Notes under the pieces: generated by a model
What the model was told of the DNA's origin: nothing
Databases searched by the model: none
Seen by the model: only the letters and a program-made list of their open reading frames with translations
NCBI GenBank assembly: GCA_965112735.1
Contig: OZ218963.1
Span: forward strand, 2,604,001-2,668,000
Length of the DNA stretch: 64,000 bases
Direction: 5' to 3'
From: Phaeosaccion multiseriatum
Lineage: Eukaryota > Protista > Ochrophyta, other classes
Shown: positions 1-62,100 of the stretch, piece by piece
How positions within the stretch are numbered: position 1 is the stretch's first letter
How the letters are laid out: the number at the start of each line of letters is the position of its first letter
Translations under genes and position numbers: made by a program

Positions 1-1
1 T

Positions 2-5053: not shown

Positions 5054-5091
5054 GGGAGCTGGCGGAAGAGGCGGGGGTGTAGTGAGGGGGA

Positions 5092-5286
5092 TGTTAGAAG
5101 TGGCCTAGTTGGGGTCCCTTGGGGACCCAATCAGGGGTGTAACGGCCGGAAAACGGGCCAACGAGACGGTAAATCAGTAATAAAGAAAGGAAGCGCAGCC
5201 TGCGTGTGGGCTGGCTTCCGGGTGCTTGCTTCAGCTTCTGCTCTGCTCTAGCTTGGCTTTGAGGCTAGCTGTCGGTAGTTTCGACA
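5092..5286 (+). repeat. Exo-Gypsy 3' LTR (195 bp), preceded by a purine-rich PPT
   Basis: TGTTAGAAGT...AGTTTCGACA follows GAGGGGGA. Near-identical copies at 12013-12207, 43586-43780, 45482-45676 and 47404-47598. Confidence 0.9.
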
Positions 5287-5424
5287 CAGACGTGCCCGCA
5301 GTTCGTGGACCCATGCCGAGGCAGACGAAAACGACCCGTCCTCCACTAGCGCCGGAAGCATCGCCTGTAGAGGCACCGGGGGGTGCCGACCGAACAAGGC
5401 GTAGAATGGCGCCATCCCCGTGCC
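5287..5424 (-). mobile_element. Inverted fragment of an Exo-Gypsy integrase region (probable target of the copy 1 insertion)
   Basis: Reverse complement of about 4056-4192. Confidence 0.8.
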
Positions 5425-11192: not shown

Positions 11193-12012
11193 TGTGCCCA
11201 CAAGCTCTACAAAGGGTTTAGAGAATACTCCACAGGCTTTGTGCCAATGTGTGAAGCCTCCTATTATAATCTTGTAGCCTGCTCGTCGAGCGAGGTACCT
11301 TGTTGAATAAAAGAAAAGAAAGTGGAAGTCCAAAGGACATTCCAGAAAAGGGGTCCTGACACCAATACTGACATAGCCCTATTTTAACCCCGGGCAAGTA
11401 TCAATATCGACCTAGACCCAGACAGCACACTGCCTCCAAGGCGAGCTCGGGAGGGACTACCCTCAAGACTAAGCTTTACGTACAGCATCCTCAATGTCGT
11501 GAACGCGCAGCTCTCTTGCGTACCTTCTTCGTCGGCGGTCCTGAGCCTCGAGACAGAAACTCCCGAGCTCGACTGACAAGCTCCTGGTCTGGGAAGTTCT
11601 TAAGAAAGGTCTCCAAAAGGACAGGCACATCAGCCGCAAGCGTACGGATGGGCTCCATGCTGTTCTCCTCCGGCTCAAAGCCAACCCACTGAACTTGGAC
11701 GAGAAAGTCGCCACCCTCATCCTCGACGAGGTCGACGAATCTCTCCACAGTCCACAAGGGAGTGTCGTACTGGATCTGGGCGAGTGCGTCAGTGCTGACA
11801 CCAACACTCGCATCACAATAGTAGCGTAGCCGTGAAGCATGATCAGTGAAGCGCCTCTTCTTGCCAATCAGCTCCTCCACTTCATATACCATGGGGCTCA
11901 CCTCACAGATCACTCTGTAGGGCCCACTCCACACTCCACGCAGCTTGCTATGGGCCGAAACGTTGGCCATATTGACAAAGACACCAGGAACGAAGACGCC
12001 AGTGTGACCAAG
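11193..12012 (-). mobile_element. 3' remnant of a clade 2 Gypsy: GPY and chromodomain ORF (11491-11970), PPT, and an LTR starting at 11429 (far end uncertain)
   Basis: WSGPYRV and QWVGF..NSMEP motifs; GGAGGCAG followed by TGTGC on the minus strand. Confidence 0.75.
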
Positions 12013-14073: not shown

Positions 14074-15137
14074 TGTTAGAAGTCGTACTTTTGCTAGACT
14101 GATACCTGCCCTCTGAATTCAGACCGGGAGGTATCAGTCTAGCAAAAGTACGACTTCTAACAAGACCGTTGCTAGAAGACGAACCCCCCCCCCCACCGCA
14201 CGTAGTGGAGAGAAGTAACTCGCAGTCTGAGAATCAGCATCATGGGCCAGCAAGCTGGTAACAGTTTTCGCCGAAAAATACGCTTTTCAGAGGGCAGGTA
14301 TCAGTCTAGCAAAAGTACGACTTCTAACAAGGCTAGTTGTGAGTTCGAACCTTAGCTGTCGCTTGTGAAAAAGCGTATTTTTCGGCGAAAACTGTTACCA
14401 GCTTGCTGGCCCATGATGCTGATTCTCAGACTGCGAGTTACTTCTCTCCACTATGTGCGGTGGGGGGGGGGGGGTCGTCTTCTAGCAACGGTCTTGTTAG
14501 AAGTCGTACTTTTGCTAGACTGACACCTCCCGGTCTGAATTCAGAGGGCAGGTATCACTCGCTAGTTGTGAGTTCGAACCCTAGCTGTCGCTTGTGAAAA
14601 AGCGTATTTTTCGGCGAAAACTGTTACCAGCTTGCTGGCCCATGATGCTGATTCTCAGACTGCGAGTTACTTCTCTCCACTATGTGCGGTGGGGGGGGGT
14701 GTTACGACGCGTTTGGATAATACTGAAGGCATATTGGGATGCCTTATATCGTAACAAAAGAGGGGTTCGAGTCCTACCTGAGGAAAGAGAAAAAAAAAAT
14801 AATATGATGTTTCCCGAGGGGGGTTCCCAAGGAGATACCAGAGGGTCGTACCCTGTTGAAAAAAGCACGTGAAAACTGGTGGGATAAACAAAGGGACAGT
14901 ATTTAGGGACGAACGTGTCGGTAGCGCCAACCCCCCGGTGCGAAGGTGTAGGGCTCAAGGAACCCACCTAGGCGTTTGGATAATACTGAAGGCATATTGG
15001 GATGCCTTATATCGTAACAGGGGGGGGTTCGTCTTCTAGCAACGGTCTTGTTAGAAGTCGTACTTTTGCTAGACTGATACCTCCCGGTCTGAATTCAGAG
15101 GGCAGGTATCAGTCTAGCAAAAGTACGACTTCTAACA
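14074..15137. mobile_element. Hairpin-terminal mini-element family A, head-to-head composite, TSD CTCC
   Basis: 89-bp palindromic TG..CA repeat at both ends in inverted orientation. CTCC at 14070-14073 and 15138-15141; the empty site is visible near 52089. Confidence 0.9.
14700..15019 (+). mobile_element. TRIM-like mini-element family D (57-bp repeat TGTTACGA..TCGTAACA), nested in the G-run of element A
   Basis: Direct repeats 14700-14756 and 14972-15019. B-box GGTTCGAGTCC at 14764-14774. Flanked by G runs (GGGG TSD compatible). Confidence 0.75.
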
Positions 15138-18100
15138 CTCCGCATCAGCCCGCTGCGCACGCACCCACCACGCGGCCTCGACATGCAGACTGCCACCCAA
15201 AGCTCCAGCCGCTCGTCTGTGCGCCGCGGCAGCAGGCACCGTGCCTGGTAGAGACCACCCAAACTGTCGCTCTGCCTCTCGTCGATGCCCATCAAGCTCG
15301 CGCTGCAAGGTGGACTCCTGCTCCACCGGCTCCTTGGAAACTGAATCCACTGCATCCTCAGCTTCATTATCCACTGCATCCGCAGCTTCATTACCTGCAT
15401 CCCCCGCTTCTTCCGTGACCAGTAGATCTGCCGTACCAGGCTCCGACGGCGACTCCGCAGCAGGCGGCTCCCCAGGGGGGGTGATGCGGCCCTCCTCCGT
15501 AACAAGCTCCTCACCCTCGGTGGCACCAGCAACGGCAGCTGGACACACCTCCGCGGGCAGACGAGACGCATCCTCCTCAAGCTCGGCCTCCCATGCAGCC
15601 CACGCATGAGCGGCCGCGGCACCCGTTTGCTGAGCCTCCGCTGGTGTGCACATCGAGAAGTAGTCACGCGACACCTGACGGACTTGCTTCCATGGCAACT
15701 CGATCATGGTATCTAGGTGACTGGCCAACGCGCCCACCACCTTCCGCTGGCGCTTATATGTCCGCGTGAACCGCTCCACCATCTGCATCATTGTCTCCCA
15801 CGAGCACTGCAGTTTGAATTGCAGTTTGGCCAGGTCGAATACCTCCAACGTCTTGGAGTGGACACCAAAGATGTAGAGCGGTGATACGTGGTCGCGATCG
15901 CCCCAATAACCAACCGCGGCCTGCATGAACCTGCCGACTTGCATCTCCTCCTGCTCCGCAGGGGTGTGAGCAGGGCTCATCGCGCTAAGCTCCACCCCCG
16001 GGCCACCATAAACGAACGGCACACACTCCGCCATGCGAGGCCAGAGGCGGAGGAGCGCCGCAGCGTCAGCAAACGCGTACTCCCGTTGAGCGGCGGACAG
16101 CGGCCGCTTCGTCCAGTCGGTGGCCCGCTCCTCCTTGCTAAGGTGTTGCTCCAAAAACATGCTGACAAGGTCCTGGAGTCCGATGAACTGAGTATGTTCG
16201 GGGCACACGCGCTTAAAGAGGTCACTGGTGTCCACCAAGTTGACGATGTGCTGGACATGCTCCGCGAGCTCCGGCCATCGGCCCAGGGCACGTTGGTCGT
16301 GACTCCAGTGGTGAGCCAGCTTCACAATCGAGGGTTCGGCCCACAGGTCCCGCAACGCTTGCGCCAGTACCATCATACCCCCCGCCTTCTGAAGCGCGTC
16401 TAGATCAATCAAGAGCCCATAGTCACGCGCCACATCCGGCAGCGGCCCAACCTGCACGGCCAATTGCAGCAGCGACGCGCGCCGTCGGTGACGCGCCCAC
16501 TCCGAATCCATAGCGACCACTTTGGCTGTGCGCAACTGAGTCGATAGAGCCTGCAAGTGCCTCGGCGTAGACACGTACGTGCACCTCGCTGCGGAAATGT
16601 GGCTCACAAATGGCGACATCTGACCCCGCTGCCAGGCGTCTATCACCGCCTTCTTCACACCCAGCTGAGGTGCTCGCGTAGGCTGCCATCCACATTGCTG
16701 GAGACGCTGTGTCCAAGCACGCCGAGCAGTACCCCTGCGTGACTGCGTCGCCGCCAAGTCCACCTCTGCAGTCTGCCAGGCTTGTAGGGCCTCCGCTCCG
16801 CTCTGCTGCTGGTGGTGGCACCGTTGCTGCTGTTGCTGGGCCGTCACGGCAGGCACAGGAATAGGAAGGCGTGTGTCGGCTTCGCCCTGCAGCTGTTGCG
16901 CCACTGCGAGAAAGCGAAGCAGTGCGCCCTCCGTGGGCTCCTCCCAATGAAGGCTGCACTCGTCCCCTACCATCTCCACCAGGTTCAACTGCACCCCCAT
17001 CGAAGCACACCAGGTGTGCAAGGGCGACGGCCACTCGCACGCAACCATGGCCAAGTCTACCCCCGCATGCGTCTCCCACTCCTGCACCGGAAGCGCGTTG
17101 CGAGAGAGGCAGTCAGGCACCACCATTTGCTTCCCGGGACGATGCACAAACTGCAAGTGGTGCGTAGAGAGCCGCTCGTACCATCTGAACAGCTTGGAAT
17201 TGGTATCCTTGTGCCCAGCCAACCACAACAAGGGCTGATGGTCCGTCACCACTGTGGTGGGGTAGTGGCAGATGTACATGGCCAGTTTACGCACACACCA
17301 CACCACTGCCAGCAGCTCTAGCTCCGTGCTGCTCAGTCGCGCCTCCGTCTCCGTGGTAGCCCGACTGATGAACGTCACCACACGCTCCTCCCCGGTCGCA
17401 TCGTTCTGAGAGAGCACTCCTGCTAACCCTTCCGTCGAGGCATCGGTGCTCAGGGTGAAAGTCGTCGCTGGCCCGTACTCCGGAAAAGCCAGTGCAGGGA
17501 AAGACAACAAGTCGGCAACGAGTCCATCCCAAGCTGCATCGTGCGAGGCATTCCAGGCGCGGTGCTCACGTCGACGCCCTTACGCAGCAGCCCATTGAGA
17601 GGCCGCACTTTGCGCGCAAACTCCGGAATGAAACGGCGAAAGTAGCTGAGCATGCCAATGAAACGCCGCACCTGCTTAACTCGATTGACGCCGCCATCCT
17701 TCGCAAGCAACCTCAACGGCTTGACCAGCTCTTGCACCGCCGCATGCTTGGCCGGGTCTGTGCGCACCCCATTCTGATCCAGCAAATGCCCGCAGAACCG
17801 CACCTCCGGTGCACCCAATACAGCCTTACTCGGCTCCAACTTGAGCTTGTGCTCCACCAACCGCGCAAGCACAGCATCCAAATGCTCCAGATGCTGCTCA
17901 ACCGTAGCCGAAAACACAGCAATATCGTCCACAAAGCATGCCACATGCTCCTGAAGCCCCTTGAGCACCTTATTCATAAGCCGCACAAAGACTGCAGGCG
18001 CATTCTTCGCGCCCTGCGGCATCACTCGCCAAGCGTAAGTACCACTGTGGCACACAAAGGTGGATATGTCCTCTTCCGCTGCTGATGCCATCGGCACATT

Positions 18101-21100
18101 GAAGTAGCCCGACATGATGTCCATCACCGAGAACACCTTGGAGCCATGCATCTCTGCCAGCAGATCATCAATCACCGGCATCGCAGGGGCCTCCGTGCGA
18201 CACGCATCATTCAGCTGAGACAAGTCACACGTCATACGTACCACAGGCGTCCCATCCTCATGACACTTGGTTTTGCCAGCTGCGTCCGTCTTCAAGACCG
18301 CCATCAGCGGAGTGGCCCAGCTGGAAGTGCTGGGGCGAATGATGGCAGCCGCGAGAAGCTTGTCAATCTCAATTTCAATCCCCCGCCGCAAATGGGGAGG
18401 ATACCGTCGAGCGGAGCTCCGAATGGGCTGCTGATTCGCATCCTTCAGTCCCCACTCAAAGAAGAGAGTATCCGTCCGACCGTAGTCACCAGGCCTCTGA
18501 CAGAATGCTTGCGACCGAGCGCGAAGGATCGCCACCAGTCCCCAGCGTTGCACCTCCGTCCAGGCACCGTCGCCAATCGTGATAGCGTGCAGGGGCGACG
18601 GTAGCTCCCTGAGCCAGAACTGAGCCCGCTCCGTAGTGAGCTTGGCACGGCGCCGCTGCTCCACCACAAGCTCTCCTGCATCCCACGACTCCACTCCACC
18701 ACCAAGACAGCGACTCTCCTGCAGCACCGCTCGCAATTGGATAAGGAGCAGCAGCGCATTGGTCATATCCTGCTCCACCTTCTCCTGCTGCTGTAATGGG
18801 CGACTAGACCACAACGACAAGAGCTGTTGGGCCCATGCGGCCACAGCAACGTCCCCAACGCCGCTCAGACCCGTGCCAGCGGCTTGGTGTACATGGGGGC
18901 GCAGGAGCAGTAGCGCGGTCACAGCCCCTTCCTCTGCCGCAACCAAGCACTCGCGCAGACGTCCATACACTCGCTCTGACAGGTGAGGATACCACTCCTT
19001 GATCAACTGCACTCCTGCCATCAGAGTCCCACCGGACGTGTCACTCTGGCTACCGAGTCGCAAGGCACCATCCGCATCCAGTACCCACCCATCACCGCGT
19101 AGGTCAGTCAATGATGTGCCCACCGCCGCCGACGATGAACCTGCCTCGGACCGTAGTGGCGGTTCCTCCGACGCCACTGACGATGCCGCCCCTGGCGCAG
19201 GCCTGCTGGTGGAATCATCAGCCACCGCCACGTGGTGGACCTGCAGTGGGCCTGTACGAGGCGGTCGGAGCTCCTGCAACTGTGTCTGACGGCGTCGCGC
19301 TACCGCCGCCGGAGCCACCTGCTGCTGTACCGCATTGGACCGCTGAACCTGCTGAGCTGCCGACGAATCCGCTCGCTTAAAGAGCTCTTCCCGCTGGGCC
19401 TTGTGCCGTCGCTGCAATGCCCACTGGCGTTGCTGCCGTGCCTGCTGCTGTGCCGCTTGTAACCGCTTGGCCTGCTGCGTTGCCAACCATGCTGCTGTCT
19501 CCTCCTTCGAGTCCACTCGTGGTGTGTCAGCTCGTCTGGCCGGCACTCGCACTGTCCCCCCCCAGGAGGACGCCAAGGGCACTCGACGCTCCCGCGGCAC
19601 CGGTCGTTGCCCCAAGTCGCTCCCCCAAGCGAGACGAAGCCCTCGGTGATGCCAGGCGCAGGAGCCGTCAGCGCACAGCTCCCGTCGCAGCGGCAAAACT
19701 TGTCGTCGCACTTGCTCATGGCGCTCCAACACTGCTTGCCGATGAACCTGGTCCCACAGCACAGGAGACTCCACAAGCATTGATGCCACTCTCCGACGTT
19801 GCCGCTGCAACCGCCCAGCACCCACTCGACTCTGCCGACACTGACTCCCCTTCTTGCCGCTGCGCTGCAAATGCTGAAACCGGGCCTTCACTGCCGGCTG
19901 AGGCACCAGAGTCGATGGCACCCCCACCTCAGTCCGTGGGTGCGTCAGGGCCTGCACCTGCACAGCTTGCAGCGGAAGCGCCGTAGCCCCCAGCTCAGCC
20001 TCCTCTGGTACCACCGAGCAGCGAACTACAGGCCCCTGCGGTGGGTACCAGACCGGCTCAGCTCCTGCTTCAGATTCAGCCGGCTGCGGCGACGCCTCCT
20101 CCTCCACCACAGACTCAACCGCCTCCCGCGCCTTGGACCATGGCAGCCTGCGCTTCATCACACGCCTCACCATCCCGCCAAGAACACCAAGCCAGGAGGA
20201 GGGGGCCGCTGCAGTCTCCGGCACGGTATCTGAAGAAGCCGGCTCAGCGAGCATGAGCGCGGCCACCTCAGCGCTCGCCTCCGAGTCGAGCAAGCAAGAA
20301 GCCGTGCCGATGACCTGCCCAGGAACGACCACAATGACCTGATTGTGGTGGTTCTGCACTGTGATTCGGTAACTCTGCCCCCCAGCATACACACCATCTT
20401 TGTGCGCCACTAGAACCTGCTCGTGCTCCAGCCACCATAGAACGTCCGTCTCTGCCGCCAAGTGTCCGTGAGCGCCCAGCTCCACCACCGCCTGGACACC
20501 CTCAACGATACCCGTAAGCTCGAGGAGAAGGGACCCCGTCTGTCCAGGTCCCAAGCTCAAAGCCTCCACAGCACGTACCCCCCCAACAGCAGCGTTTGCC
20601 GTCCACCACTGCCAGCACTTGCACAGCCAAGGCATCGGACGGACGAGCATCCGACGTGGCCTCCTCCGAAGGAGTCGGAAGTACGTAGAGCTGCTTCGCA
20701 CGATGATCGACGTGTGCTAAAGCTACGAACAGTACAGACCGCTCAGGGGTTTGGGCTAATATATGCCGCGTCTGTTGCGACGTCGGTGCCCGTATTGATA
20801 GTCTCTTTACTGCCCGCTGCTTCAAGCGTGGTCTCTTGTCTTGTACTTGGCAGTCTACAGGTCCCTTCGTTGCCACCTGGCACTTTCGGGACTCTCAGGT
20901 ACGTTGAGGCGGGAACTCTCTTTAGGACCGTTCTTATTTCTATAACCCCAGAACGTCCACCCGGAAACCGCAGGCGAGATGGTCCCTTATCACACTACCC
21001 CCAAGCGACAGTCCGAGTCACTCGAGTGCTATAGTACCTGGTGTCTACTACTTTCGTTTCTTCTTGGAACCACTGTCGCGTGATCCGCGTCTCTTGCGGG

Positions 21101-26632: not shown

Positions 26633-26929
26633 TGTAAGAAGGCATCCTTTTGCTAGGCTGGCAGCTATCCACTGAATATTCACGGGGGTAGCTGCCAACC
26701 TAGCAAAAGGATGCCTTCTTACATGTCTGTCAGTTAAGGTCGATCCTCCCCCCCCCTCCGAAAACTCCTCCGAAAACCTTGGGGGGGTAACTACCTAGGA
26801 TTTCTCCCACACCGAGCCCGTGAATTTCAGTGTCATGCCCACCTTTCGCCCTCGGAAATTTTCTCACCATCCTCAGAATCGAACCCCGTCTGGGCATGTA
26901 AGAAGGCATGCTTTTGCTAGGCTGGCAGC
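26633..26929. mobile_element. Hairpin mini-element family B, right hairpin truncated, at a deletion junction in Exo-Gypsy copy 2
   Basis: 91-bp palindrome TGTAAGAAGG..CCTTCTTACA at 26633-26723, followed by the internal region and a partial arm. Confidence 0.85.
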
Positions 26930-27139
26930 GCTCTGACCGCCTGCCGCCGCTGCACGCGACTCACAATGCCGAGCAGCTCCTCACGCGTAGCCGGGATGGC
27001 GTTGCATTCTATCCAGCCATGGCCGGCGCGGCGACAAGTCATGCAGTTAAATGGGGCATTGCCGTTGCCACGCTGCTTGAGCGAGCCGTGGAACAGCAAG
27101 GGCCGCTGCTGGGTGGGCGTGAGCCGCGGCTGCTGCGCC

Positions 27140-27617: not shown

Positions 27618-28149
27618 TGTTAGAAGTCGTGCTTTTGCTAGACTGGTACCTCCCGGTCTGAATTCAGAGGGTAGGTGTAAGAAGGCATCCTTTTGCTAGG
27701 CTGGCAGCTACCCCCGTGAATATTCAGTGGATAGCTGCCAGCCTAGCAAAAGGATGCCTTCTTACATGTCTGTCAGTTAAGGTCGATCCTTCCCCCCCCT
27801 CCGAAAACTCCTCCGAACACCTTGGGGGGGTTACTACCTAGGATTTCTCCCACACCGAGCCCGTGCATTTCAGTGTCATGCCCAACTTTCGCCCTCGGAA
27901 ATTTTCTCACCATCCACAGAATCGAACCCCGTCTGGGCATGTAAGAAGGCATCATTTTGCTAGGCTGGCAGCTATCCACTGAATATTCACGGGGGTAGCT
28001 GCCAGCCTAGCAAAAGGATGCCTTCTTACATAGGTACCAGTCTAGCAAAAGCACGACTTCTAACATAATATTCAGTGGATAGCTGCCAGCCTAGCAAAAG
28101 GATGCCTTCTTACATAGGTACCAGTCTAGCAAAAGCACGACTTCTAACA
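27618..28149. mobile_element. Family A hairpin containing a complete family B element (27676-28030, TSD TAGG), followed by a partial duplication (28067-28149)
   Basis: TAGG on both sides of B; the A arms can be rejoined across it. Confidence 0.88.
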
Positions 28150-28822: not shown

Positions 28823-29111
28823 TGTAAGAAGGCTTCCTTTTGCTAGGCTGGCAGCTATCCACTGAATATTCACGGGGGTAGCTGCCAGCCTAGCAAAAGG
28901 ATGCTTTCTTACATGCCCAGACGGGGTTCGATTCTGAGGATGGTGAGAAAATTTCCGAGGGCGAAGGTTGGCCATGACACTGAAATTCGAGGTAACGGGC
29001 TCGGTGTGGGAGAAATCCTAGGTAGTTACCCCCCCCCCCCCCAAGGTTTTCGGAGGAGTTTTCGGAGGGGGGGGAAGGATCGACCTTAACTGACAGGCAT
29101 GTAAGAAGGCT
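28823..29111 (+). mobile_element. Family B element with 3' hairpin truncated
   Basis: Hairpin 28823-28913, then TGCCCAGACGGGGTTCGATTC and the internal region. Confidence 0.85.
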
Positions 29112-43585: not shown

Positions 43586-45676
43586 TGTCGAAACTACCGA
43601 CAGCTAGCCTCAAAGCCAAGCTAGAGCAGAGCAGAAGCTGAAGCAAGCACCCGGAAGCCAGCCCACACGCAGGCTGCGCTTCCCTTCTTTTATTACTGAT
43701 TTACCGTCTGTTGGCCCGTTTTCCGGCCGTTACACTACTGATTGGGTCCCCAAGGGACCCCAACTAGGCCACTTCTAACATCCCCCTCACTACACCCCCG
43801 CCTCTTCAGCCAGCTCCCTCAGAAGCCGAGATGCGAGCGATAGAATTGCGTCTCGTGCGCCAGCCCGCTGCCCCACTTCTCATGTTGCCGCAGACGGATC
43901 GTGCTTTCCCGTTTAGACCTATGCCCTCTTTTGACATTCACTCCTGGATCAAGGGCAGTGTGCGGAAGGGCGTTCTCGAACGCCTCTATGGCCTTGGCGT
44001 GTCCCCGCTCCAGTAACCACTCAGCCCATTCCCAGGTCTGGAAAGTGCCGCCGTCCGACACGGCCCACCGCACGTTTTACTCTCGCCGCAGTGGCAGCCC
44101 CGTGGCTTTGCGCCAGCGGAACTTCACAATCCTCGCCAGCGTGGGCACTTTCCCCTCACTCACCTCGTCCAGCTCTAAGCTACGCTGCTCCTGCATTGCG
44201 CTGGTAGCCCACTGAGGAGAGCACCAACGGATATGATACCTGGCGAACCCTTCCGGGAGACCGAAGGGCCGCTCGCTCACCCCATCGATGAACGGCTTCG
44301 TCAAGTCTCTGTGGTACGCCCGTTTGTTAGAAGTCGTACTTTTGCTAGACTAATACCTGCCCTCTGAATTCAGACCGGGAGGTATCAGTCTAGCAAAAGT
44401 ACGACTTCTAACAAGACCGTTGCTAGAATACGAACCCCCCCCCCCCACCGCACATAGTGAAGAGAAGTAACTCGCAGTCTGAGAATCAGCATCATGGGCC
44501 AGCAAGCTGGTAACAGTTTTCGCCGAAAAATACGCTTTTTCACAAGCGACAGCTAAGGTTCGAACTCACAACTAGCCTTGTTAGAAGTCGTACTTTTGCT
44601 AGACTGATACCTGCCCTCTGAATAATTTTATATTTTATATTCAGAGGGCAGGTATCAGTCTAGCAAAAGTACGACTTCTAACAAGGCTAGTTGTGAGTTC
44701 GAACCTTAGCTGTCGCTTGTGAAAAAGCGTATTTTTCGGCGAAAACTGTTACCAGCTTGCTGGCCCATGATGCTGATTCTCAGACTGCGAGTTACTTCTC
44801 TTCACTATGTGCGGTGGGGGGGGGGGGTTCGTCTTCTAGCAACGGTCTTGTTAGAAGTCGTACTTTTGCTAGACTGATACCTCCCGGTCTGAATTCAGAG
44901 GGCAGGTATCAGTCTAGCAAAAATACGACTTCTAACAAACGGGCGTACCACAGAGACTTGACGAAGCCGTTCATCGATGGGGTGAGCGAGCGGCCCTTCG
45001 GTCTCCCGGAAGGGTTCGCCAGGTATCATATCCGTTGGTGCTCTCCTCAGTGGGCTACCAGCGCAATGCAGGAGCAGCGTAGCTTAGAGCTGGACGAGGT
45101 GAGTGAGGGGAAAGTGCCCACGCTGGCGAGGATTGTGAAGTTCCGCTGGCGCAAAGCCACGGGGCTGCCACTGCGGCGAGAGTATAACGTGCGGTGGGCG
45201 GTGGCGGACGGCGGCACTTTCCAGACCTGGGAATGGGCTGAGTGGTGGCTGGAGCGGGGACACGCCAAGGCCATAGAGGCGTTCGAGAAAGCCCTTCCGC
45301 ACACTGCCCTTGATCCAGGAGTGAATGTCAAAAGAGGGCATATGTCTAAACGGGAAAGCACGATCCGTCTGCGGCAACATGAGAAGTGGGGCAGCGGGCT
45401 GGCGCACGAGACGCAATTCTATCGCTCGCATCTCGGCTTCTGAGGGAGCTGGCGGAAGAGGCGGGGGTGTAGTGAGGGGGGTGTTAGAAGTGGCCTAGTT
45501 GGGGTCCCTTGGGGACCCAATCAGTAGTGTAACGGCCGGAAAACGGGCCAACGAGACGGTACATCAGTAATAAAGAAAGGAAGCGCAGCCTGCGTGTGGG
45601 CTGGCTTCCGGGTGCTTGCTTCAGTTTCTGCTCTGCTCTAGCTTGGCTTTGAGGCTAGCTGTCGGTAGTTTCGACA
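43586..45676. repeat. 2.09-kb palindrome: Exo-Gypsy LTR, pol 3' end and family A element, mirrored about 44625-44637
   Basis: The left half is the reverse complement of the right half with scattered substitutions. Confidence 0.92.
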
Positions 45677-51279: not shown

Positions 51280-54200
51280 TTGTACGCATAGGTGAGCCCG
51301 GCGACGTAATCTGGCCACTGCTGCATCTGTGACTCCACGGTCGTCGCCAACATGTCCTTGATCGTGGCCATGAAGCGCTCCACCTGCCCATTGGCCTGTT
51401 GGTGCATCGGCGTCGTGAACACTTGCGACGCCGATAGAACCCGCATCACATCGCCCATGAGCGCACTGGTGAACTGCGAGCCTTGATCACTCACCAGCAC
51501 TCGGGGCACACCCAGGGTGGTGACGACATGCCGCACGAAGGCCCGAGCAATACCTTCCGCCGTATAGTCCTGTGCCCTCAAAGGCACCACCACTGTCCAC
51601 TTCGTGAACCAATCCTGAAACACCAAGAGGTACTCCTCACCGCCCATGCCCATAGGAAAGGGGCCAGCCACATCAGCGCCCATGACCGCCCAAGGTCCAT
51701 CCACCTTGGAAATGGACGACAGCGGCACAGGCTTTGGCTGCCGGCGAGGAGTCTTGCGTGTCTGGCACGCCAGACAGGAGCGGGCCCAATACAGCGCATG
51801 TGCATTCATCTTCTCCCACCATACGCGCTCTTGCAGCGCGTCTAGCATACGTCCCGGGCCTTGGTGCCCACCTGCGATGGCATCGGTGTGGGCGGCATGC
51901 AGCAAGGCTGGCCGCATCTCCTTGGGCACACATACTTGTAGCCGAGTGTGCCGCACCCGCCACCGAAAGCCCCCAGGAGCCCACTTACGCATCAAGAGCC
52001 CGTCCTCATCCACAAAGAACTCACCCCCACCGGCATCCACCACGCCGCCGGTGGGCCCAGCCTGAACACGGCGACGGAGTGCTTCCAGCTCCGCATCAGC
52101 CCGCTGCGCACGCACCCACCACGCGGCCTCGACATGCAGACTGCCACCCAAAGCTCCAGCCGCTCGTCTGTGCGCCGCGGCAGCAGGCACCGTGCCTGGT
52201 AGAGACCACCCAAACTGTCGCTCTGCCTCTCGTCGATGCCCATCAAGCTCGCGCTGCAAGGTGGACTCCTGCTCCACCGGCTCCTTGGAAACTGAATCCA
52301 CTGCATCCTCAGCTTCATTACCTGCATCCCCTGCTTCTTCCGTGACCAGTAGATCTGCCGTACCAGGCTCCGACGGCGACTCCGCAGCAGGCGGCTCCCC
52401 AGGGGGGGTGATGCGGCCCTCCTCCGGAACAAGCTCCTCACCCTCGGTGGCACCAGCAACGGCAGCTGGACACACCTCCGAGAGCAGACGAGACGCATCC
52501 TCCTCAAGCTCAGCCTCCCATGCAGCCCACGCATGAGCGGCCGCGGCACCCGTTTGCTGAGCCTCCGCTGGTGTGCACATCGAGAAGTAGTCACATGACA
52601 CCTGACGGACTTGCTTCCATGGCAACTCGATCATGGTATCTAGATGACTGGCCAACGCGCCCACCACCTTCCGCTGGCGCTTATATGTCCGCGTGAACAG
52701 CTCCACCACCTGCATCATTGTCTCCCACGAGCACTGCAGTTTGAATTGCAGTTTGGCCAGGTCGAATACCTCCAACGTCTTGGAGTGGACACCAAAGATG
52801 TAGAGCGGTGACACGTGGTCGCGATCGCCCCAATAACCAACCGCGGCCTGCATGAACCTGCCGACTTGCATCTCCTCCTGCTCCGCAGGGGTGTGAGCAG
52901 GGCTCATCGCTCTAAGCTCCACCCCCGGGCCACCATGGACGAACGGCACACACTCCGCCATGCGAGGCCAGAGGCGGAGGAGCGCCGCAGCGTCAGCAAA
53001 CGCGTACTCCTGTTGAGCGGCGGACAGCGGCCGCTTCGTCCAATCGGTGGCCCGCTCCTCCTTGCTAAGGTGTTGCTCCAAAAACATGCTGACAAGGTCC
53101 TGGAGTCCGATGAACTGAGCATGTTCGGGGCACACGCGCTTAAAGAGGTCACTGGTGTCCACCAAGTTGACGATGTGCTGGACATGCTCCGCGAGCGCCG
53201 GCCATCGGCCCAGGGCACGTTGGTCGTGACTCCAGTGGTGAGCCAGCTTCACAATCGAGGGTTCGGCCCACAGGTCCCGCAACACTTGCGCCAGTACCAT
53301 CATACCCCCCGCCTTCTGAAGCGCGTCTAGATCAAGCAAGAGCCCATAGTCACGCGCCACATCCGGCAGCGGCCCAACCTGCACGGCCAATTGCAGCAGC
53401 GACGCGCGCCGTCGGTGACGCGCCCACTCCGAATCCATAGCGACCACTTTGGCTGTGCGCAACTGAGTCGATAGAGCCTGCACGTGCCTCGGCGTAGACA
53501 CGTACGTGCACCTCGCTGCGGAAATGTGGCTCACAAATGGCGGCATCTGACCCGGCTGCCAGGCCTCTATCACAGCCTTCTTCACACCCAGCTGAGGTGC
53601 TCGCGTAGGCTGCCATCCACATTGCTGGAGACGCTGTGTCCAAGCACGCCGAGCAGTACCCTTGCGTGACTGCGTCGCCGACAAGTCCACCTCTGCAGTC
53701 TGCCAGGCTTGTAGGGCCTCCGCTCCGCTCTGCTGCTGGTGGTGGCACCGTTGCTGCTGTTGCTGGGCCGTCACGGCAGGCACAGGAATAGGAAGGCGTG
53801 TGTCGGCTTCGCCCTGCAGCTGTTGCGCCACTGCGAGAAAGCGAAGCAGTGCGCCCTCCGTGGGCTCCTCCCAATGAAGGCTGCACTCGTCCCCTACCAT
53901 CTCCACCAGGTTCAACTGCACCCCCATCGAAGCACACCAGGTGTGCAAGGGCGACGGCCACCCGCACGCAACCATGGCCAAGTCTACCCCCGCATGCGTC
54001 GCCCACTCCTGCACCGGAAGCGCGTTGCGAGAGAGGCAGTCAGGCACCACCATTTGCTTCCCGGGACGATGCACAAACTGCAAGTGGTGCGTAGAGAGCC
54101 GCTCGTACCATCTGAACAGCTTGGAATTGGTATCCTTGTGCCCAGCCAACCACAACAAGGGCTGATGGTCCGTCACCACTGTGGTGGGGTAGTGGCAGAT

Positions 54201-56771
54201 GTACATGGCCAGTTTGCGCACACACCACACCACTGCCAGCAGCTCCAGCTCCGTGCTGCTCAGTCGCGCCTCCGTCTCCGTGGTAGCCCGACTGATGAAC
54301 GTCACCACACGCTCCTCCCCGGTCGCATCTATCTGAGAGAGCACTCCTGCTAACCCTTCCGTCGAGGCATCGGTACTCAGGGTGAAAGTCGTCGCTGGCC
54401 CGTACTCCGGAAAAGCCAGTGCAGGGGAAGACAACAAGTCGGCAACGAGTCCATCCCAAGCTGCATCGTGCGAGGCATTCCAGGCGGTGCTCACGTCGAC
54501 GCCCTTACGCAGCAGCCCATTGAGGGGCCGCACTTTGCGCGCAAACTCCGGAATGAAACGGCGAAAGTAGCTGAGCATGCCAATGAAACGCCGCACCTGC
54601 TTAACTCGATTGACGCCGCCATCCTTCGCAAGCAACCTCAACGGCTTGACCAGCTCTTGCACCGCCGCATGCTTGGCCGGGTCTGTGCGCACCCCATTCT
54701 GATCCAGCAAATGCCCGCAGAACCACACCTCCGGTGCACCCAATACAGCCTTACTCGGCTCCAACTTGAGCTTGTGCTCCACCAACCGCGCAAGCACAGC
54801 ATCCAAATGCTCCAGATGCTGCTCAACCGTAGCCGAAAACACAGCAATATCGTCCACAAAGCATGCCACATGCTCCTGAAGCCCCTTGAGCACCTTGTTC
54901 ATAAGCCGCACAAAGACTGCAGGCGCATTCTTCGCGCCCTGCGGCATCACTCGCCAAGCGTAAGTACCACTGTGGCACACAAAGGTGGATATGTCCTCTT
55001 CCGCTGCTGATGCCATCGACACATTGAAGTAGCCCGACATGATGTCCATCACCGAGAACACCTTGGAGCCACGCATCTCTGCCAGCAGATCATCAATCAC
55101 CGGCATCGCAGGGGCCTCCGTGCGACACGCATCATTCAGCTGAGACAAGTCACACGTCATACGTACCACAGGCGTCCCATCCTCATGACACTTGGTTTTG
55201 CCAGCTGCGTCCGTCTTCAAGACCGCCATCAGCGGAGTGGCCCAGCTGGAAGTGCTGGGGCGAATGATGGCAGCCGCGAGAAGCTTGTCAATCTCAATCT
55301 CAATCCCCCGCCGCAAATGTGGAGGATACCGTCGAGCGGAGCTCCGAATGGGCTGCTGATTCGCATCCTTCAGTCCCCACTCAAAGAAGAGAGTATCCGT
55401 CCGACCGTAGTCACCAGGCCTCTGGCAGAATGCTTGCGACCGAGCACGAAGGATCGCCACCAGTCCCCAGCGTTGCACCTCCGTCCAGGCACCGTCGCCA
55501 ATCGTGATAGCGTGCAGGGGCGACGGTAGCTCCCTGAGCCAGAACTGAGCCCGCTCCGTAGTGAGCTTGGCACGGCGCCGCTGCTCCACAACAAGCTCTC
55601 CTGCATCCCACGACTCCACTCCACCACCAAGACAGTGACTCTCCTGCAGCACCGTTCGCAATTGGATAAGGAGCAGCAGCGCATTGGTCATATCCTGCTC
55701 CACCTTCTCCTGCTGCTGTAATGGGCGACTAGACCACAACGACAAGAGCTGTTGGGCCCATGCTGCCACAGCAACGTCCCCAACGCCGCTCAGACCCGTG
55801 CCAGCGGCTTGGTGTACATGGGGGCGCAGGAGCAGTAGCGCGGTCACAGCCCCTTCCTCCGCCGCAACCAAGCACTCGCGCAGACGTCCATACACTCGCT
55901 CTGACAGGTGAGGATACCACTCCTTGATCAACTGCACTCCTGCCATCAGAGTCCCACCGGACGTGTCACTCTGACTACCGAGTCGCAAGGCACCATCCGT
56001 ATCCAGTACCCACCCATCACCGCGTAGGTCAGTCAATGATGTGCCCACAGCCGCCGACGATGATCCTGCCTCGGACCGTAGTGGCGGTTCCTCCGACGCC
56101 ACTGACGACGCCGCCCCTGTCGCAGGCCTGCTGGTGGAATCATCAGCCACCGCCACGTGGTGGACCTGCAGCTGGCTTGTACGAGGCGGTCGGAGCTCCT
56201 GCAACTGTGTCTGACGGCGTCGCGCTACCGCCGCCGGAGCCACCTGCTGCTGCACCGCATTGGACCGCTGAACCTGCTGAGCTGCCGACGAATCCGCTTG
56301 CTTAAAAGAGCTCTTCCCGCTGGGCCTTGTGCCGTCGCTGCAATGCCCACTGGCGCTGCTGCCGTGCCTGCTGCTGTGCCGCTTGTAACCGCTTGGCCTG
56401 CTGCGTTGCCAACCATGCTGCTGTCTCCTCCTTCGAGTCAACTCGTGGTGTGTCAGCTCGTCTGGCCGGCACTCGCACTGTCCCCCCCCAGGAGGCCGCC
56501 AAGGGCACGCGACGCTCCCGCGGCACCTGTCGTTGCCCCAAGTCGCTCCCCCAAGCGAGACGAAGCCCTCGGCGATGCCAAGCGCAGGAGCCGTCAGCGC
56601 ACAGCTCCCGTCGCAGCGGCAAAACTTGTCGTCGCACTTGCTCATGGCGCTCCAACACTGCTTGCCGATGAACCTGGTCCCACAGCACAGGAGACTCCAC
56701 AAGCATTGATGCCACTCTCCGACGTTGCCGCTGCAATCGCCCAGCACCCACTCGACTCTGACGACACTGAC

Positions 56772-57390
56772 TGTTAGAAGTCGTACTTTTGCTAGACTGA
56801 TACCTCCCGGTCTGAATGACTTCTAACAAGGCTAGTTGTGAGTTCGAACCTTAGCTGTCGCTTGTGAAAAAGCGTATTTTTCGGCGAAAACTGTTACCAG
56901 TGTGGGGCCGGTACCTCCCTCGATTATGAGGAGGAAGGCACCCCCAAGCTGAGCGCTCCGTTCCGGGCCCAAAAGGGGAGAGATAAGAGTCCAATGCTGG
57001 CACCAAGTGTATTAATGACTATGGCTATCCCACCCTAAGACCCTGGACAGCTCCCTTGTTTAAGGAAGCAATCCAATTGGTCTTTACGGGTTCAGGAGTG
57101 CGGAGGGGCCAACCAGGCCCCAAAAGGCCGCGTCCCCACATCATTGACTTACTGTCCTGCCTACCTAATAATACGTAATTGGGCCTAACCCAGCTCCACC
57201 ACACCAGCTTGCTGGCCCATGATGCTGATTCTCAGACTGCGAGTTACTTCTCTCCACTATGTGCGGTGGGGGGGGGGGGGTTCGTCCTCTAGCAACGGTC
57301 TTGTTAGAAGTCGTACTTTTGCTAGACTGATACCTCCCGGTCTGAATTCAGAGGGCAGGTATCAGTCTAGCAAAAGTACGACTTCTAACA
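56772..57390 (+). mobile_element. Family A monomer (5' hairpin internally deleted), TSD TGAC
   Basis: TGAC at 56768-56771 and 57391-57394. The empty site is in copy 2 near 19843. Confidence 0.9.
56901..57203. repeat. 303-bp solo-LTR-like insertion, TSD CCAG, inside element A
   Basis: TGTGG..CCACA ends; removing it restores the A internal sequence. Confidence 0.8.
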
Positions 57391-59116
57391 TGACTCCCCT
57401 TCTTGCCTCGGCGCTGCAAATGCTGAAACCGGGCCTTCACTGTCGGCTGAGGCACCAGAGTCGATGGCACCCCCACCTCAGTCCGTGGGTGCGTCAGGGC
57501 CTGCACCGGCACAGCTTGCAGCGGAAGCGCCGTAGCCCCCAGCTCAGCCTCCTCTGGTACTACCGAGCAGCGAATTACAGGCCCCTGCGGTGGGTACCAG
57601 ACCTGCTCAGCTCCTGCTTCAGCTTCAGACGGCTGCAGCGACACCTCCTCCTCCACCACAGACTCAACCGCCTCCCGCGCCTTGGACCATGGCAGCCTGC
57701 GCGTCACCGCACGCCTCACCATCCCGCCAAGAGCACCAAGCCAGGAGGAGGGGGCCGCTGCAGTCTCCGGCACGGTATCTGAAGAAGCCGGCTCAGCGAG
57801 CATGAGCGCGGCCACCTCAGCACACGCCTCCGAGTCGAGCAAGCAAGAAGCAGTGCCGATGACCTGCCCAGGAACGACCACAATGACCTGATTGTGGTGA
57901 TTCTGCACTATGATTCGGTAACTCTGCCCCCCAGCATACACACCATCTTTGTGCGCCACTAGAACCTGCTCGTGCTCCAGCCACCAGAGAACGTCCGCCT
58001 CCGCTGCCAAGTGTCCGTGAGCGCCCAGCTCCACCACCGCCTGGACACCCTCACCGATGCCCGTAAGCTCGAGGCGAAGGGACCCCGTCTGTCCAGGTCC
58101 CAAGCTCAAAGCCTCCACAGCACGTACCCCCCCAACAGCAGCGTTGCCGTCCACCACTGCCAGCACTTGCACAGCCAAGGCATCGGACGGACGAGCATCC
58201 GACGTGGCCTCCTCCGAAGGAGTCGGAAGTACGTAGAGCTGCTTCGCACGATGATCGACGACTGCCCCTACTTGGGTGAAGAAATCCTGCCCCAAGAAGA
58301 TGGGCCGCGCCAAGTGGTCCACCACATGAAAGGGTAGCACCGGCTGGCACGTCGGCGTGAGTCCCACCTGAAGCCAAACAAGCCCTCTGGACATGGTCTT
58401 GGCACGATTGTCAGCGTAAGACACCTGCACCCCCTTCTGCGTGGCGAGCTCTGACCGCTCCACCGTGCCATCCGCCACCAGTTGATTGAAGCAGGCTGTC
58501 GAGATGCAGCCCGCTCCTGTGCACCCACTGTCCATCAAGGCTGTAAAGGCGCTCTTCTCCACGGCGTCGGCGGCACTGGCATCCCGTGGAGCGGTAGCAG
58601 CCAAGCAATGCCGAGCGTCACTGACCTTCACTGGCGAGCGCACCGTAACCTCGATCGTGTGGCCCCGCCCTGCTGGGACTGCCGTACGACCCGTGGCAGC
58701 CACCGCTTCGGCAATCTCAGCTCTCCGCACTGCTGTCTGCAAGGCGGCCACCCCCCCCGGAGCGTCCTCCATCCGCACACGGTAGAGAGCCAAGGCAGCG
58801 CGTTGCACACACCCCTCACACATATCACACTCACTGTCAACAGCCGACGCACAGGCACAAGCTCCCGGACTGGGGGGCTCCTTGAGCAGAGCGACTCCCG
58901 CGCCAGGCTCCAAGGCTACTGCATGACAAGCACGCACAAACGGATCAAGGGCTAGCGTGTGCAGCCCCGCCTCCTCCGTCAACACAGCCGTGAAAGCAGC
59001 CTCCTGCTGATGCTGCTGTGCTGCTGCTGTCGCACGAGCACGCTGCCTCCGCTGCTTCCTCCGTACCCGCAGTCGAAGAGCCACTGCGCGCCTCGCTGCA
59101 TCCTGCTGCTCCTGTG

Positions 59117-62100
59117 TGTGCTAAGCTGAGATAGTAGAAACGTTAAGGGGTTTGGACTAAGTATATGCTGCGCCTATTGTAAGAAGGCATCCTTTTGCTA
59201 GGCTGGCAGCTATCCACTGAATATTCACGGGGGTAGCTGCCAGCCTAGCAAAAGGATGCCTTCTTACATGCCTGTCAGTTAAGGTCGATCCTTCCCCCCC
59301 CTTCGAAAACTCCTCCGAAAACCTTGGGGGGGTAACTACCTAGGACTTCTCCCACACCGAGCCCGTTACCTCGAATTTCAGTGTCATGCCCAACTTTCGC
59401 CCTCGGAAATTTTCTCACCATCCTCAGAATCGAACCCCGTCTGGGCATGTAAGAAAGCATCCTTTTGCTAGGCTGGCAGCTATCCACTGAATATTCACGG
59501 GGGTAGCTGCCAGCCTAGCAAAAGGATGTCTTCTTACATGCCCAGACGGGGTTCGATTCTGTGGATGGTGAGAAAATTTCCGAGGGCGAAAGGTGGGCAT
59601 GACACTGAAATTCGAGGTAACGGGCTCGGTGTGGGAGAAATCCTAGGTAGTTACCCCCCCAAGGTTTTATGTAAGAAGGCATCCTTTTGCTAGGCTGGCA
59701 GCTATCCATTGAATATTCACGGGGGTAGCTGCCAGCCTAGCAAAAGGATGCCTTCTTACATGCCTGTCAGTTAAGGTCGATCCTTCCCCCCCCTCCGAAA
59801 ACTCCTCCGAAAACCTTGGGGGGGCAACCACCTAGGATTTCTCCCACACCGAGCCCGTTACCTCGAATTTCAGTGTCATGCCCACCTTTCGCCCTCGGAA
59901 ATTTTCTCACCATCCACAGAATCGAACCCCGTCTGGGCATGTAAGAAGACATCCTTTTGCTAGGCTGGCAGCTATCCACTGAATATTCACGGGGGTAGCT
60001 GCCAGCCTAGCAAAAGGATGCCTTCTTACATGCCCAGACGGGGTTCGATTCTGTGGACGGTGAGAAATTTCCGAGGGCGAAAGTTGGGCATGACACTGAA
60101 ATTCACGGGCTCGGTGTGGGAGAAATCCTAGGTAGTTACCCCCCCAAGGTTTTCGGAGGAGTTTTCGGAGGGGGGGGAAGGATCGACCTTAACTGACAGG
60201 CATGTAAGAAGGCATCCTTTTGCTAGGCTGGCAGCTACCCCCGTGAATATTCAGTGGATAGCTGCCAGCCTAGCAAAAGGATGCCTTCTTACACTATGGT
60301 GGGGCGTCAGTGTCCGTATTGATAATATATCTCTACTACTTGCTGATGCAAAGCTTGTGCCCACAAAGAGGAGGGTGAAACGCCAGAGCCGTTGATCCCC
60401 CTCGGGGCGTGCCTAGGAAACCGACATTCTTATTATACCCCAGAATGTGTGACCGGAAACCCTCAGGCAGGACAATCTACCACACTACCCCCAAGCGACA
60501 GTTCGAGCCGACTGGGAAGTAAGTGTGTCTATCTAGTTTGTGTCCGCTTTCGTGTGCGCGCGGAGCGCGGCGGCTTAGTGGCCGATCGCGTCGTAGTCTT
60601 GCGCAGATAGGCTCGGACTGCGCTGATCAACTGCTTGTCCTGATGGTGCTGCAGGTAGGTCTCCAGTAAACGTGGAGTATCTTCGTGCAGCGCCTCGATG
60701 GGCTCCTCGCTATTCTCGAGGGCGTCAAAGCCACGCCACTTAACAATGACGTGCCATGAATCATCTGCGTGCTTAACGAGGCCTTCAAAGGCCTCCACCA
60801 CAAAGTCTTGGGTGTTATACGAAATCTGTTGAAGTACGTCGGTAGTGACGTTAACGTGAGCACCGCAGTAGTAGCGGAGCCGGCTGATGTGTACCTCATA
60901 GGTACGCTTCTTGCCCACAAGCTCCTCCACCTTGTACACGTGTTGCTCAAGGGCTTCAAGCACTCGGCAGGGCCCATGCCACTTGCCTAGTATCTTGCTT
61001 GTAGGCCCTACTGTTGCAACGAGTACGTAGACTCCGACCTGAAACAGCGTCTCGCTGTTGAGCTGCTTAGCTCTGGCCAAGTCCTGACGATGCTCTGCAC
61101 CACGTCTGCCACTCATCAACCTCTGGTTGATGCCATCGCGCTTGTGATCGCGGAGGGTAGTCAGTTGGCGCGCCGCCTCGGCACGCTGCCCCTCCTTCCT
61201 CTGATGGAGTTGTGTCGCAAGGGTGTCTCTCTGCGCCGGGGTCAGCTGCAGTAGCCGAACCTTTTGCATCCGATCCGCGTCGTGGATCAAAATCGTGTCG
61301 AGAGGCCGCTGTGGTACGTGACCACTGTGCAGCTGGATGGGAGACAAGTTAGACCGACTGCTCTTGTTGGAGCTGTTCTCAACAGCCTCCATCACTGGCA
61401 GTAGCTGCGGCCATGTCTCGGGCGGCTGCCGTAGTTCAGACATCATTGATTTCATGATCTTCTGCAGTGTCTGTACACCACGCTCGCCCAATCCTCGACT
61501 GTATGGGTTGTGTGCCACCACAAAGTGGTGGTTGCACCGCAAGAGCTGACTTAACTCACGTATCACCTCATTTAGGAAATGACTGCCTCGGTCACTCTGC
61601 CACCTGGGCACTACGCCATGCTGTGCGAACCAGCGCAACAGATCGCGTGCACACACTCGTGCAGTAGCTTCCAAACATGGCTCATACATTGACAATGATG
61701 AAAAATCATCAAAGATGCACAGCACTTGCTTGACCTGAAGCTTCATGAACCCTTCTGGGGACTCTGCCCATATGACTCCATCGCCAATCTTGACGAAGTC
61801 AAACCAGATGAGTTGCTGGGGTCCAGTGGCGTGCCATTGAGCTAGCAGGGGGCGAGGCACTCTCTCGCCCTTGCCGTTGGTGAGGCAGTGGAGACAGTTC
61901 TGAACGAGGCTGCGCACGTCCTTGTCTAGCGACTGCCAGATGAACTTCTCCTTAAGAGCACTCAGGGTGTTTGTCTCTCCCTGATGGCCCATCATACCCT
62001 GATGGCCAGTCACACACAGCCTCAGGTGCATGTCTTCCGCCTTGGCTCCCACCGAGGGAATTCAAATGCGGGTGCTGTCAGCGGGGTTGCTCGTCGGATG

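Follow-up and report, generated by a model that had tools for sequence, protein, structure and literature searches.

A four-unit array of palindromic hairpins and mini-element units at a single target site in Phaeosaccion multiseriatum, and its possible origin by copy-back of an LTR-type element

Terminal hairpins with an asymmetric bubble are characteristic of the parvoviruses, including adeno-associated virus (AAV), whose palindromic concatemers are joined via a single hairpin. The products of polymerase copy-back are mirror images with their axis at the end of the template, they contain short non-templated fillers, and asymmetric copy-back leads to a truncated partner arm. Foldback (FB) elements possess long inverted ends made up of short tandem subrepeats and are bounded by a 9-bp target site duplication (TSD). 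Among elements of the long terminal repeat (LTR) type, TRIMs (terminal-repeat retrotransposons in miniature) are known as solo repeats and as shared-repeat arrays (viz. x repeats with x-1 internal domains), and some accepted TRIMs, as well as Tf1-type elements, are without a tRNA primer site (PMC6934838). Transposons of the Ginger type have TGTNR termini, inverted ends of 40-270 bp and 4-bp TSDs, the targets being CCGG/CCGT for Ginger1 and the AT-rich RTATAY for Ginger2 (PMC2836005). Further, short inverted repeats are documented to seed inverted duplications (PMC10766183, PMC4689423). The subject of the present work is a 1116-bp array at positions 59178-60293 of a stretch of 64,000 nucleotides (hereafter the window) from Phaeosaccion multiseriatum (GenBank assembly GCA_965112735.1, contig OZ218963.1, positions 2,604,001 to 2,668,000). 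In the reading that we favour, and hold with about even confidence, this four-unit array would belong to a non-autonomous, non-coding, TRIM-like element of the LTR type, and prior to integration the cDNA of this element would copy back, or undergo template switching, at the head hairpin.

The elements represented by this array resemble TRIMs in their short non-coding internal domain, two short terminal direct repeats, TG..CA ends and short TSD, and also in the occurrence of solo repeats and shared-repeat arrays, the frequent lack of a recognisable tRNA site and a presumed dependence on an autonomous partner (PMC6934838). However, the terminal repeat is itself a near-perfect palindrome of 91 bp, no clear polypurine tract adjoins the 3' repeat, and most of the copies take the form of head-to-head inverted dimers, or of arrays with mixed orientation, inside one TSD. 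With Ginger they share TGTAA.. ends, palindromic arms and 4-bp TSDs, and the Ginger enzyme is of the Gypsy-integrase type, but the TSDs seen here are neither CCGG- nor AT-specific and the terminal cores of the monomers are direct repeats. The asymmetric-bubble hairpins and single-hairpin joints recall parvoviruses and AAV; however, there is no flip/flop equilibrium, fold-back is seen at one end only, the units are heterogeneous and the elements are inserted in the chromosome with a TSD. Mirror molecules, fillers and a truncated arm are likewise expected of copy-back products such as hairpin-primed second-strand cDNA and defective viral genomes, although the present products would be DNA that is chromosomally integrated and inherited. 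Subrepeats are absent from the arms, whose sequence is unique, and the TSD has a length of 4 bp, unlike in the FB elements. One copy (locus L055, described below) resembles the outcome of origin-dependent inverted-repeat amplification (ODIRA) or fold-back inversion, but the triplications that result from ODIRA have their middle copy inverted, it produces no TSD-bounded units, and it does not predict that the unit tails should face outwards. In the open-access literature, where only papers on chromosomal palindromes were retrieved, no description was found of a TRIM or a miniature inverted-repeat transposable element (MITE) whose terminal repeats are palindromic and which forms inverted multimers in one TSD, nor of the regular copy-back of retrotransposon cDNA.

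The hairpin of these elements (family B) is a 91-bp palindrome, TGTAAGAAGG...CCTTCTTACA, with TGTAAG..CTTACA termini (i.e. TGT..ACA ends), arms of 35-38 bp and a 21-nt core, in which a 10-nt inner palindrome (TGAATATTCA) is placed between the unequal flanks TCCAC and CGGGGG. As single-stranded DNA the 91-nt hairpin folds with -47.7 kcal/mol (z = -15.8), and a 26-nt arm probe has 20 matches within the window compared with 0 expected. The units that alternate with the hairpins are of ~179 bp; their 'head' bears the motif GGTTCGA, which is T-arm/B-box-like, and their 'tail' bears a G-run. In the array four units, in the orientations -, +, -, +, are interspersed with five hairpins, all given on the + strand. 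Hairpin H1 (59178..59268) is the outer tail hairpin of unit U1 (59269..59447, - strand), which is complete at 179 bp. It is followed by H2 (59448..59538), a head-to-head joint, and by U2 (59539..59669, + strand), of which only unit positions 1-130 are present, with a TTTT end and an extra A (59669) before H3. Hairpin H3 (59670..59760) is the tail-to-tail joint and the canonical tail hairpin of the complete unit U3 (59761..59939, - strand); H4 (59940..60030) is again a head-to-head joint; and U4 (60031..60202, + strand), which lacks GAGGTA(A) (6-7 bp) similar to several copies at other loci, is followed by its outer tail hairpin H5 (60203..60293), the mirror image of H1. The cores of H1-H4 read TCCAC/TGAATATTCA/CGGGGG ('flip'), with one substitution in H3, whereas that of H5 is the reverse complement ('flop').

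The flanks of the array are derived from the LTR of a ~5.5-kb element with dozens of copies in the genome. The left part of this host LTR (59117..59173, + strand, start TGTGCTAAGC), as recognised from paralogous LTR copies, is interrupted by the array and resumes at 60298, and a CTAT is present on either side (59174..59177 and 60294..60297, neither with a strand). In ~25 paralogous copies of the LTR the two flanks are contiguous and share exactly one CTAT, and due to these empty sites the 1116 bp are seen to be an insertion with a true 4-bp TSD. The array thus entered as, or descends from, one insertion. The original prediction, which was made from the sequence of the window, is hence borne out with respect to the alternation of hairpins with reverse and forward units, the presence of a 91-bp hairpin whose asymmetric core occurs as two isomers, and the single insertion with a CTAT duplication. 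The nesting of one element in another within the array was also considered, and it was rejected as no internal 4-bp duplication is present around H3-H4, H2-H3 or H3-H5.

A genome-wide census, covering 67 Mb in 22 contigs, places this array in a larger context. Family B is represented by ~99 arms (~50 hairpins) and ~25 units, most of them at 2.35-2.75 Mb of contig C14, within a nest of Gypsy copies. Its commonest form is a head-to-head palindrome of ~632 bp (viz. a central hairpin with unit(-) on its left and unit(+) on its right, each unit being followed outwards by a tail hairpin), of which loci L002, L003, L009 and L018 are examples and L004, L013, L015, L026 and L027 are centrally deleted derivatives. 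Many of the copies are internally deleted but retain intact ends and TSDs. Perfect 4-bp TSDs flank 12 of the 14 family-B elements with intact ends (CTAT, GTGG, CACG, TCGT, CCCC twice, CACT, TACG, TGAG, TAGG, ACTG and CACC), inclusive of a monomer at window position 27676 and a solo hairpin (L056, TSD ACTG). A sister family, family A, is more abundant than B and has a hairpin of 89 bp, with arms ~76% alike to those of B and CTTTTGCTAG in the same position in both. It occurs as monomers, as direct arrays (e.g. (+,+,+) at L080, TSD CAAG), as (-,+) dimers, and as (-,-,+), (-,-,-,+) and five-unit (-,-,+,-,+) arrays; a 4-bp TSD is found in 17 of 19 elements and each array lies inside a single TSD. 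Taken together, the two families are found as monomers, solo hairpins, direct arrays and, as the usual form, palindromic head-to-head dimers of ~630 bp. The array studied here is one member of a recurring class. The five-unit array (L105 180-1320, G000:C14:2753479-2754619) is of 1141 bp and is bounded by a single TSD, GTTT.

The distribution of the two isomers in these copies bears upon how the hairpins are to be interpreted. In 25 of 26 cases the outer tail hairpin, when viewed relative to its unit, shows one and the same isomer (flop), and the cores are direct repeats in monomer L014, in the sub-units H1-U1-H2 and H3-U3-H4 of the array, and in most of the family-A monomers and direct arrays. 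The exception in both respects is the monomer at 27676..28030 (- strand), a hairpin-unit-hairpin element of 355 bp with TSD TAGG, which is inserted within a family-A-like hairpin core and is the sole copy with a non-canonical tail isomer. The two isomers are therefore mostly reporting the direction of the unit, a pattern similar to that of LTRs, and not a 50:50 hairpin transfer. It had been proposed that both isomers occur at both unit ends, and this is correct for the copies on which the proposal was based, viz. the array, the above monomer, a copy at 26633..26931 (- strand; hairpin, unit, truncated hairpin) and another at 28823..29110 (+ strand; hairpin, unit, truncated tail hairpin). Genome-wide, however, the distribution is strongly non-random, and with the tail isomer essentially fixed the inference of rolling-hairpin replication with flip/flop ends fails by the criterion of the proposal itself, viz. 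isomers fixed per end.

A second regularity concerns the direction of the fold-back. Among 19 clear inverted arrays (8 of family B and 11 of family A), tails are at both outer ends in all 19 and heads in 0, and the head-to-head joints number ~26 or more versus 3 tail-to-tail joints. In the dimers, the two outer hairpins are exact mirror isomers of each other. In five dimers (L002 and L009 of B; L071, L072 and L089 of A) the central hairpin is also mirror-symmetric, and that half of the core which lies nearest the unit stands to either side of a filler that is unique, mostly AT-rich and ~6-14 nt long, whereas in other dimers the centre is occupied by a normal, complete hairpin in one isomer or the other (L103 versus L104). 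At the tail-to-tail joints of the present array and of L105, a complete hairpin end meets a partner unit that is truncated on its tail side. The window contains a family-A head-to-head dimer with a mirror-symmetric central hairpin (44326..44937, without strand; 13-nt AT filler), which forms the axis of a 2.1-kb palindrome at 43586-45676. The arms of this palindrome are the last 739 bp of a Gypsy element (Exo-Gypsy, see below) and end exactly at the LTR terminus, the axis is the symmetric core of a family-A head hairpin, and there is no TSD at its ends (CGCG vs GTAG).

The four units of the array are of three haplotypes, viz. alpha (U1), beta (U2 and U3) and gamma (U4), and all of the variants which distinguish them recur at other loci. 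Unit U1 has its own arm variant and an A at column 62, and it differs by 3 changes from its nearest relative elsewhere (L002_R, on contig C7) but by 6-8 from its neighbours in the array. Units U2 and U3 share an arm variant and a G at column 93, with 2 mismatches between them. Unit U4 is marked by the 6-bp deletion; it is 3 changes away from another copy, located at C14:2.688 Mb, and it differs from U1 at 7 sites. In H2 the left arm has the alpha variant and the right arm the beta variant, which is mirrored by the left arm of H4. However, H2 and H4 are the same isomer, while doubling about H3 predicts mirror images, and due to this the tetramer is not explained as the doubling of one molecule. 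In ordinary dimers the arms differ by 1.7-5.6%, compared with a between-locus mean of 4.1%, and in the family-A dimer L089 they are only 90% identical, are mirrored for no more than ~45 nt on each side of the axis, and are enclosed by one TSD (ACAG). For three of the polymorphisms all four-gamete combinations are present.

A candidate source of the enzymes required by such elements is a resident Gypsy element of 12.4 kb, Exo-Gypsy, which encodes reverse transcriptase (RT), RNase H, a DEDDy 3'-5' exonuclease domain (PF01612) and integrase, with the exonuclease located between RNase H and integrase. Copies are found at 1-5287, 12012-20712 and 51280-58260 of the window and at L036/L037, and many are 97-99% identical. 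Its 3' LTR (5092..5286, + strand, 195 bp) starts with TGTTAGAAGT and ends with TTTCGACA, the TSDs are of 4 bp (CACA and CACG), and GTGAGGGGGA directly adjoins the LTR at the polypurine tract position. The 11-nt site ACCCGGAAGAC, by the 5' LTR, has its complement, GGCTTCCGGGT, within the LTR, similar to Tf1/Tf2, and this complementarity suggests that Exo-Gypsy could be self-primed in a Tf1-like, tRNA-independent manner. In head-to-head dimers of the mini-elements the unit heads would pair across the hairpin in a similar geometry; however, on inspection the monomer hairpin is without a complement of the unit head except for a 6-nt match. The first 10 nt of the family-A hairpin are identical to the LTR start TGTTAGAAGT, and the element from which this LTR derives is the candidate source of integrase and the candidate partner of family A, as judged by termini and TSD length. 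Thus, of the earlier proposal of a non-coding parasite amplified by snap-back and inserted by a Gypsy integrase, the parts concerning a non-coding parasite and integrase-type insertion are upheld: both families have TGT..ACA ends and 4-bp TSDs, the TSD length is that of Exo-Gypsy, and family A has the first 10 nt of the Gypsy LTR. As to its snap-back part, the head-to-head dimers are likewise accounted for by copy-back at a hairpin, but the parvovirus-like mode of replication is not retained.

The sequence of events envisaged in our reading is as follows. The elements would be copied via RNA by the resident Gypsy reverse transcriptase, from sense transcripts whose expected start is the middle of the head-hairpin core, immediately 5' of TTCAGTGGA, and which would run through the unit into the tail hairpin. 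The minus-strand cDNA would then have the palindromic head hairpin at its 3' end, which, being self-complementary, could be extended once it has folded back on itself or paired with another cDNA. Such extension would give mirror molecules with two complete tail ends, suitable for insertion by the Gypsy integrase with a 4-bp TSD, and further template jumps before integration, one of them leading from a complete hairpin end into a unit that stops at 130, could produce the tetramer. A copy-back of this kind would account for the outward-facing tails, for outer hairpins that are mirror images, for symmetric cores that contain fillers, for the differing haplotypes of the arms and for the rampant recombination. 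If so, 'flip' and 'flop' would be marking the orientation of the units and should not be interpreted as isomers generated by hairpin transfer.

Several observations weigh against this interpretation. No tRNA-complementary primer site is present next to the 5' repeat (ARAGORN reported 0 tRNAs and Rfam gave no tRNA match), and the unit head, which begins TGCCCAGACGGGGTTCGATTC, is T-arm-like in the tRNA sense and non-complementary to the 3' end of a tRNA. No clear polypurine tract adjoins the tail hairpin, the G-rich run of family B (GGAGGGGGGGGAAGGA) being 20 nt upstream; in family A a G13 run is found at the same distance. No RNA runs holding the stretch were found. No LTR of a partner for family B was found in the window: the terminus of this family differs from TGTTAGAAGT at positions 4 and 10, every site of its start TGTAAGAAGG in the window is a B hairpin and none is an LTR, and apart from the 10 terminal nt of family A the units show no similarity to the leader or 3' sequences of Exo-Gypsy, in which packaging and priming signals would be sought. 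Further, the model does not account for the regeneration of precise outer ends of the hairpin from RNA, the internal hairpins of the tetramer are ordinary asymmetric ones, so that its joints could be due to within-arm recombination, and the hairpins do provoke chromosomal fold-backs that include host DNA (as at L055), indicating that some rearrangement is post-integrational. A tRNA or Pol III origin of the unit was considered separately and rejected, as ARAGORN found none and the only Rfam matches were sub-threshold and to generic miRNA hairpins; the resemblance of the unit to A-box/B-box sequences is only a lead.

The most serious competitor, which we nevertheless consider rather unlikely, is that the elements belong to the same class but the arrays were formed after integration, with a CTAT monomer or dimer growing to four units by recombination within the chromosome, template switching during replication, or gene conversion. 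The instability of the hairpins in the chromosome, as seen in the 27-bp inverted host flank of L055, the duplication of a half-hairpin and its flank at 28031-28149, the central deletions in many copies, and the clustering of copies within 0.4 Mb, which favours gene conversion, are all in accordance with such growth; tandem arrays of TRIMs are also usually attributed to unequal recombination (PMC6934838), and template switching at inverted repeats is documented in yeast (PMC10766183). However, random inversion or recombination should produce heads-out and tails-out arrays equally, in contrast to the 0 versus 19 observed, and unequal sister-chromatid exchange, which predicts U1=U3 and U2=U4, is rejected by the finding that U2=U3 with U1 and U4 of other lineages. 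Moreover, the outer hairpins of dimers are mirror isomers where the original head hairpin would be expected, and arms as different as those of L089 (10% apart) lie within one TSD. A bolder variant of our own reading, which must be regarded as doubtful, is a lineage in which the hairpin has replaced the U3-R-U5, tRNA-primer and polypurine-tract logic: the hairpin at the cDNA 3' end would prime the second strand and regenerate the terminal repeat, and the mirror multimers would be regular replication products inserted by the Gypsy integrase, in a hybrid of retrotransposition and rolling-hairpin replication that is possibly aided by the 3'-5' exonuclease of the partner.

It is improbable, in our judgement, that the elements are non-autonomous cut-and-paste DNA transposons of the Ginger type (foldback- or MITE-like), which would be moved by an integrase-derived transposase. 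Their termini, TSD length and inverted ends would all be common to Ginger (PMC2836005), internally deleted copies with intact ends and TSDs are what abortive gap repair would give, and the solo 91-bp hairpins with TSDs, such as L056, are MITE-like. However, the asymmetric cores of monomers are direct and not inverted, the TSDs show neither the CCGG/CCGT preference of Ginger1 nor the AT-rich one of Ginger2, the family-A terminus is that of a reverse-transcribing Gypsy, and the outward-facing tails and heterogeneous arms have no natural explanation under this hypothesis. All integrase domains among the long open reading frames of the window are in RT-bearing Gypsy frames and no transposase was seen among them, the genome not having been searched exhaustively. 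The model of the original prediction, viz. a DNA replicon amplified by parvovirus-like rolling-hairpin synthesis and inserted by a Gypsy integrase, accounts for the asymmetric terminal hairpins, the mirror-image outer hairpins of dimers, the combination of head-to-head joints with one tail-to-tail joint in the array, and the series of 2-4 units. It is, however, largely refuted by the isomer census and now very unlikely, for in addition to the fixed tail isomer, H2 and H4 are not mirror images, the three unit haplotypes are each nearer to other loci, and fold-back occurs at the head end only (19:0); also, no nickase of the Rep/NS1 type was noticed in the window, where no dedicated search for it was made. 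Least credible of all is an artefact of assembly, in which fold-back or chimeric long reads were built into a false palindromic array. Palindromes are indeed difficult to assemble, and the public Logan contigs, which re-show the empty-site paralogs as a 1120-bp 'skip', are fragmentary and broken in repeats, with none across the locus, so that they neither support nor refute the assembly. But a fold-back read is disfavoured because the array departs from a perfect palindrome and comprises three haplotypes, and in it the partners differ by 49 bp and by 6-7 bp, and the same architecture is present at >25 independent loci, in two families and with distinct TSDs.

If copy-back before integration is the correct explanation, then hairpins can serve as the terminal repeats of an LTR-type element, and the reverse transcription of hairpin templates would routinely yield inverted multimers that are still cleanly integrated, and this would represent a new route for making retroelement ends. 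It would also account for a source of perfect palindromes, i.e. fragile sites, in this genome, where hairpin palindromes mark rearrangements of the fold-back kind and telomere-type repeats come directly after one truncated hairpin end. Such a class would be missed by the annotation of transposable elements, as LTR finders expect direct repeats and MITE finders simple inverted ends, and it would offer a natural substrate for examining the DNA-end requirements of the Gypsy integrase.

A number of other observations were made in the course of this work. At L055 (227-698; G000:C1:3697526-3697997) a solo B hairpin is followed by a 27-bp inverted copy of its left host flank, then by unrelated DNA (~300 bp) and by half a hairpin, the whole being bordered by CACC at either end, and this arrangement looks like the mark that a fold-back or a switch of template in the chromosome would leave at the hairpin. 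In L014, L005, G000:C14:2726111-2726201 and other B hairpins, single-base variants are paired as compensating changes in both arms, the variant being present in all four arms of the L014 monomer; either the arms were copied from one another or their pairing is maintained. About 0.4 Mb of the 3.33-Mb contig C14 (G000:C14:2.35-2.75 Mb) is crowded with copies of family B, Exo-Gypsy and family A, and this region may be a centromeric or heterochromatic island of transposable elements. At L079 (1501-2206; G000:C14:2410175-2410880) two family-A monomers of different subfamilies lie 8 bp apart, with TSDs CGTG and TTCT, and this proximity, like the location of the B monomer at 27676 within a hairpin core, hints at a local insertion preference. 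In L086 (1443-1753) and L059 (226-290 and 866-930) the head or solo hairpin is without most of one arm and a terminal TGTTAG or TGTAAGAA is fused straight to the core; L086 nevertheless has a 4-bp TSD (GTAG) at its flanks, the two L059 copies lie inside a tandem duplication, and insertion may need only a few terminal nucleotides. Lastly, a family-B element at L005 (1501-1810; G000:C2:9606-9915) is situated 9.6 kb from the contig end in a subtelomeric tandem repeat. Its head hairpin is broken after TGTAAGAAGGCTTCCTTTTGC and is followed by TTAGGGTTAGGGTTAG and then by TTCT, the same 4 nt as in the left flank, and the broken end of this element may have been capped by telomere-type repeats before or at insertion.

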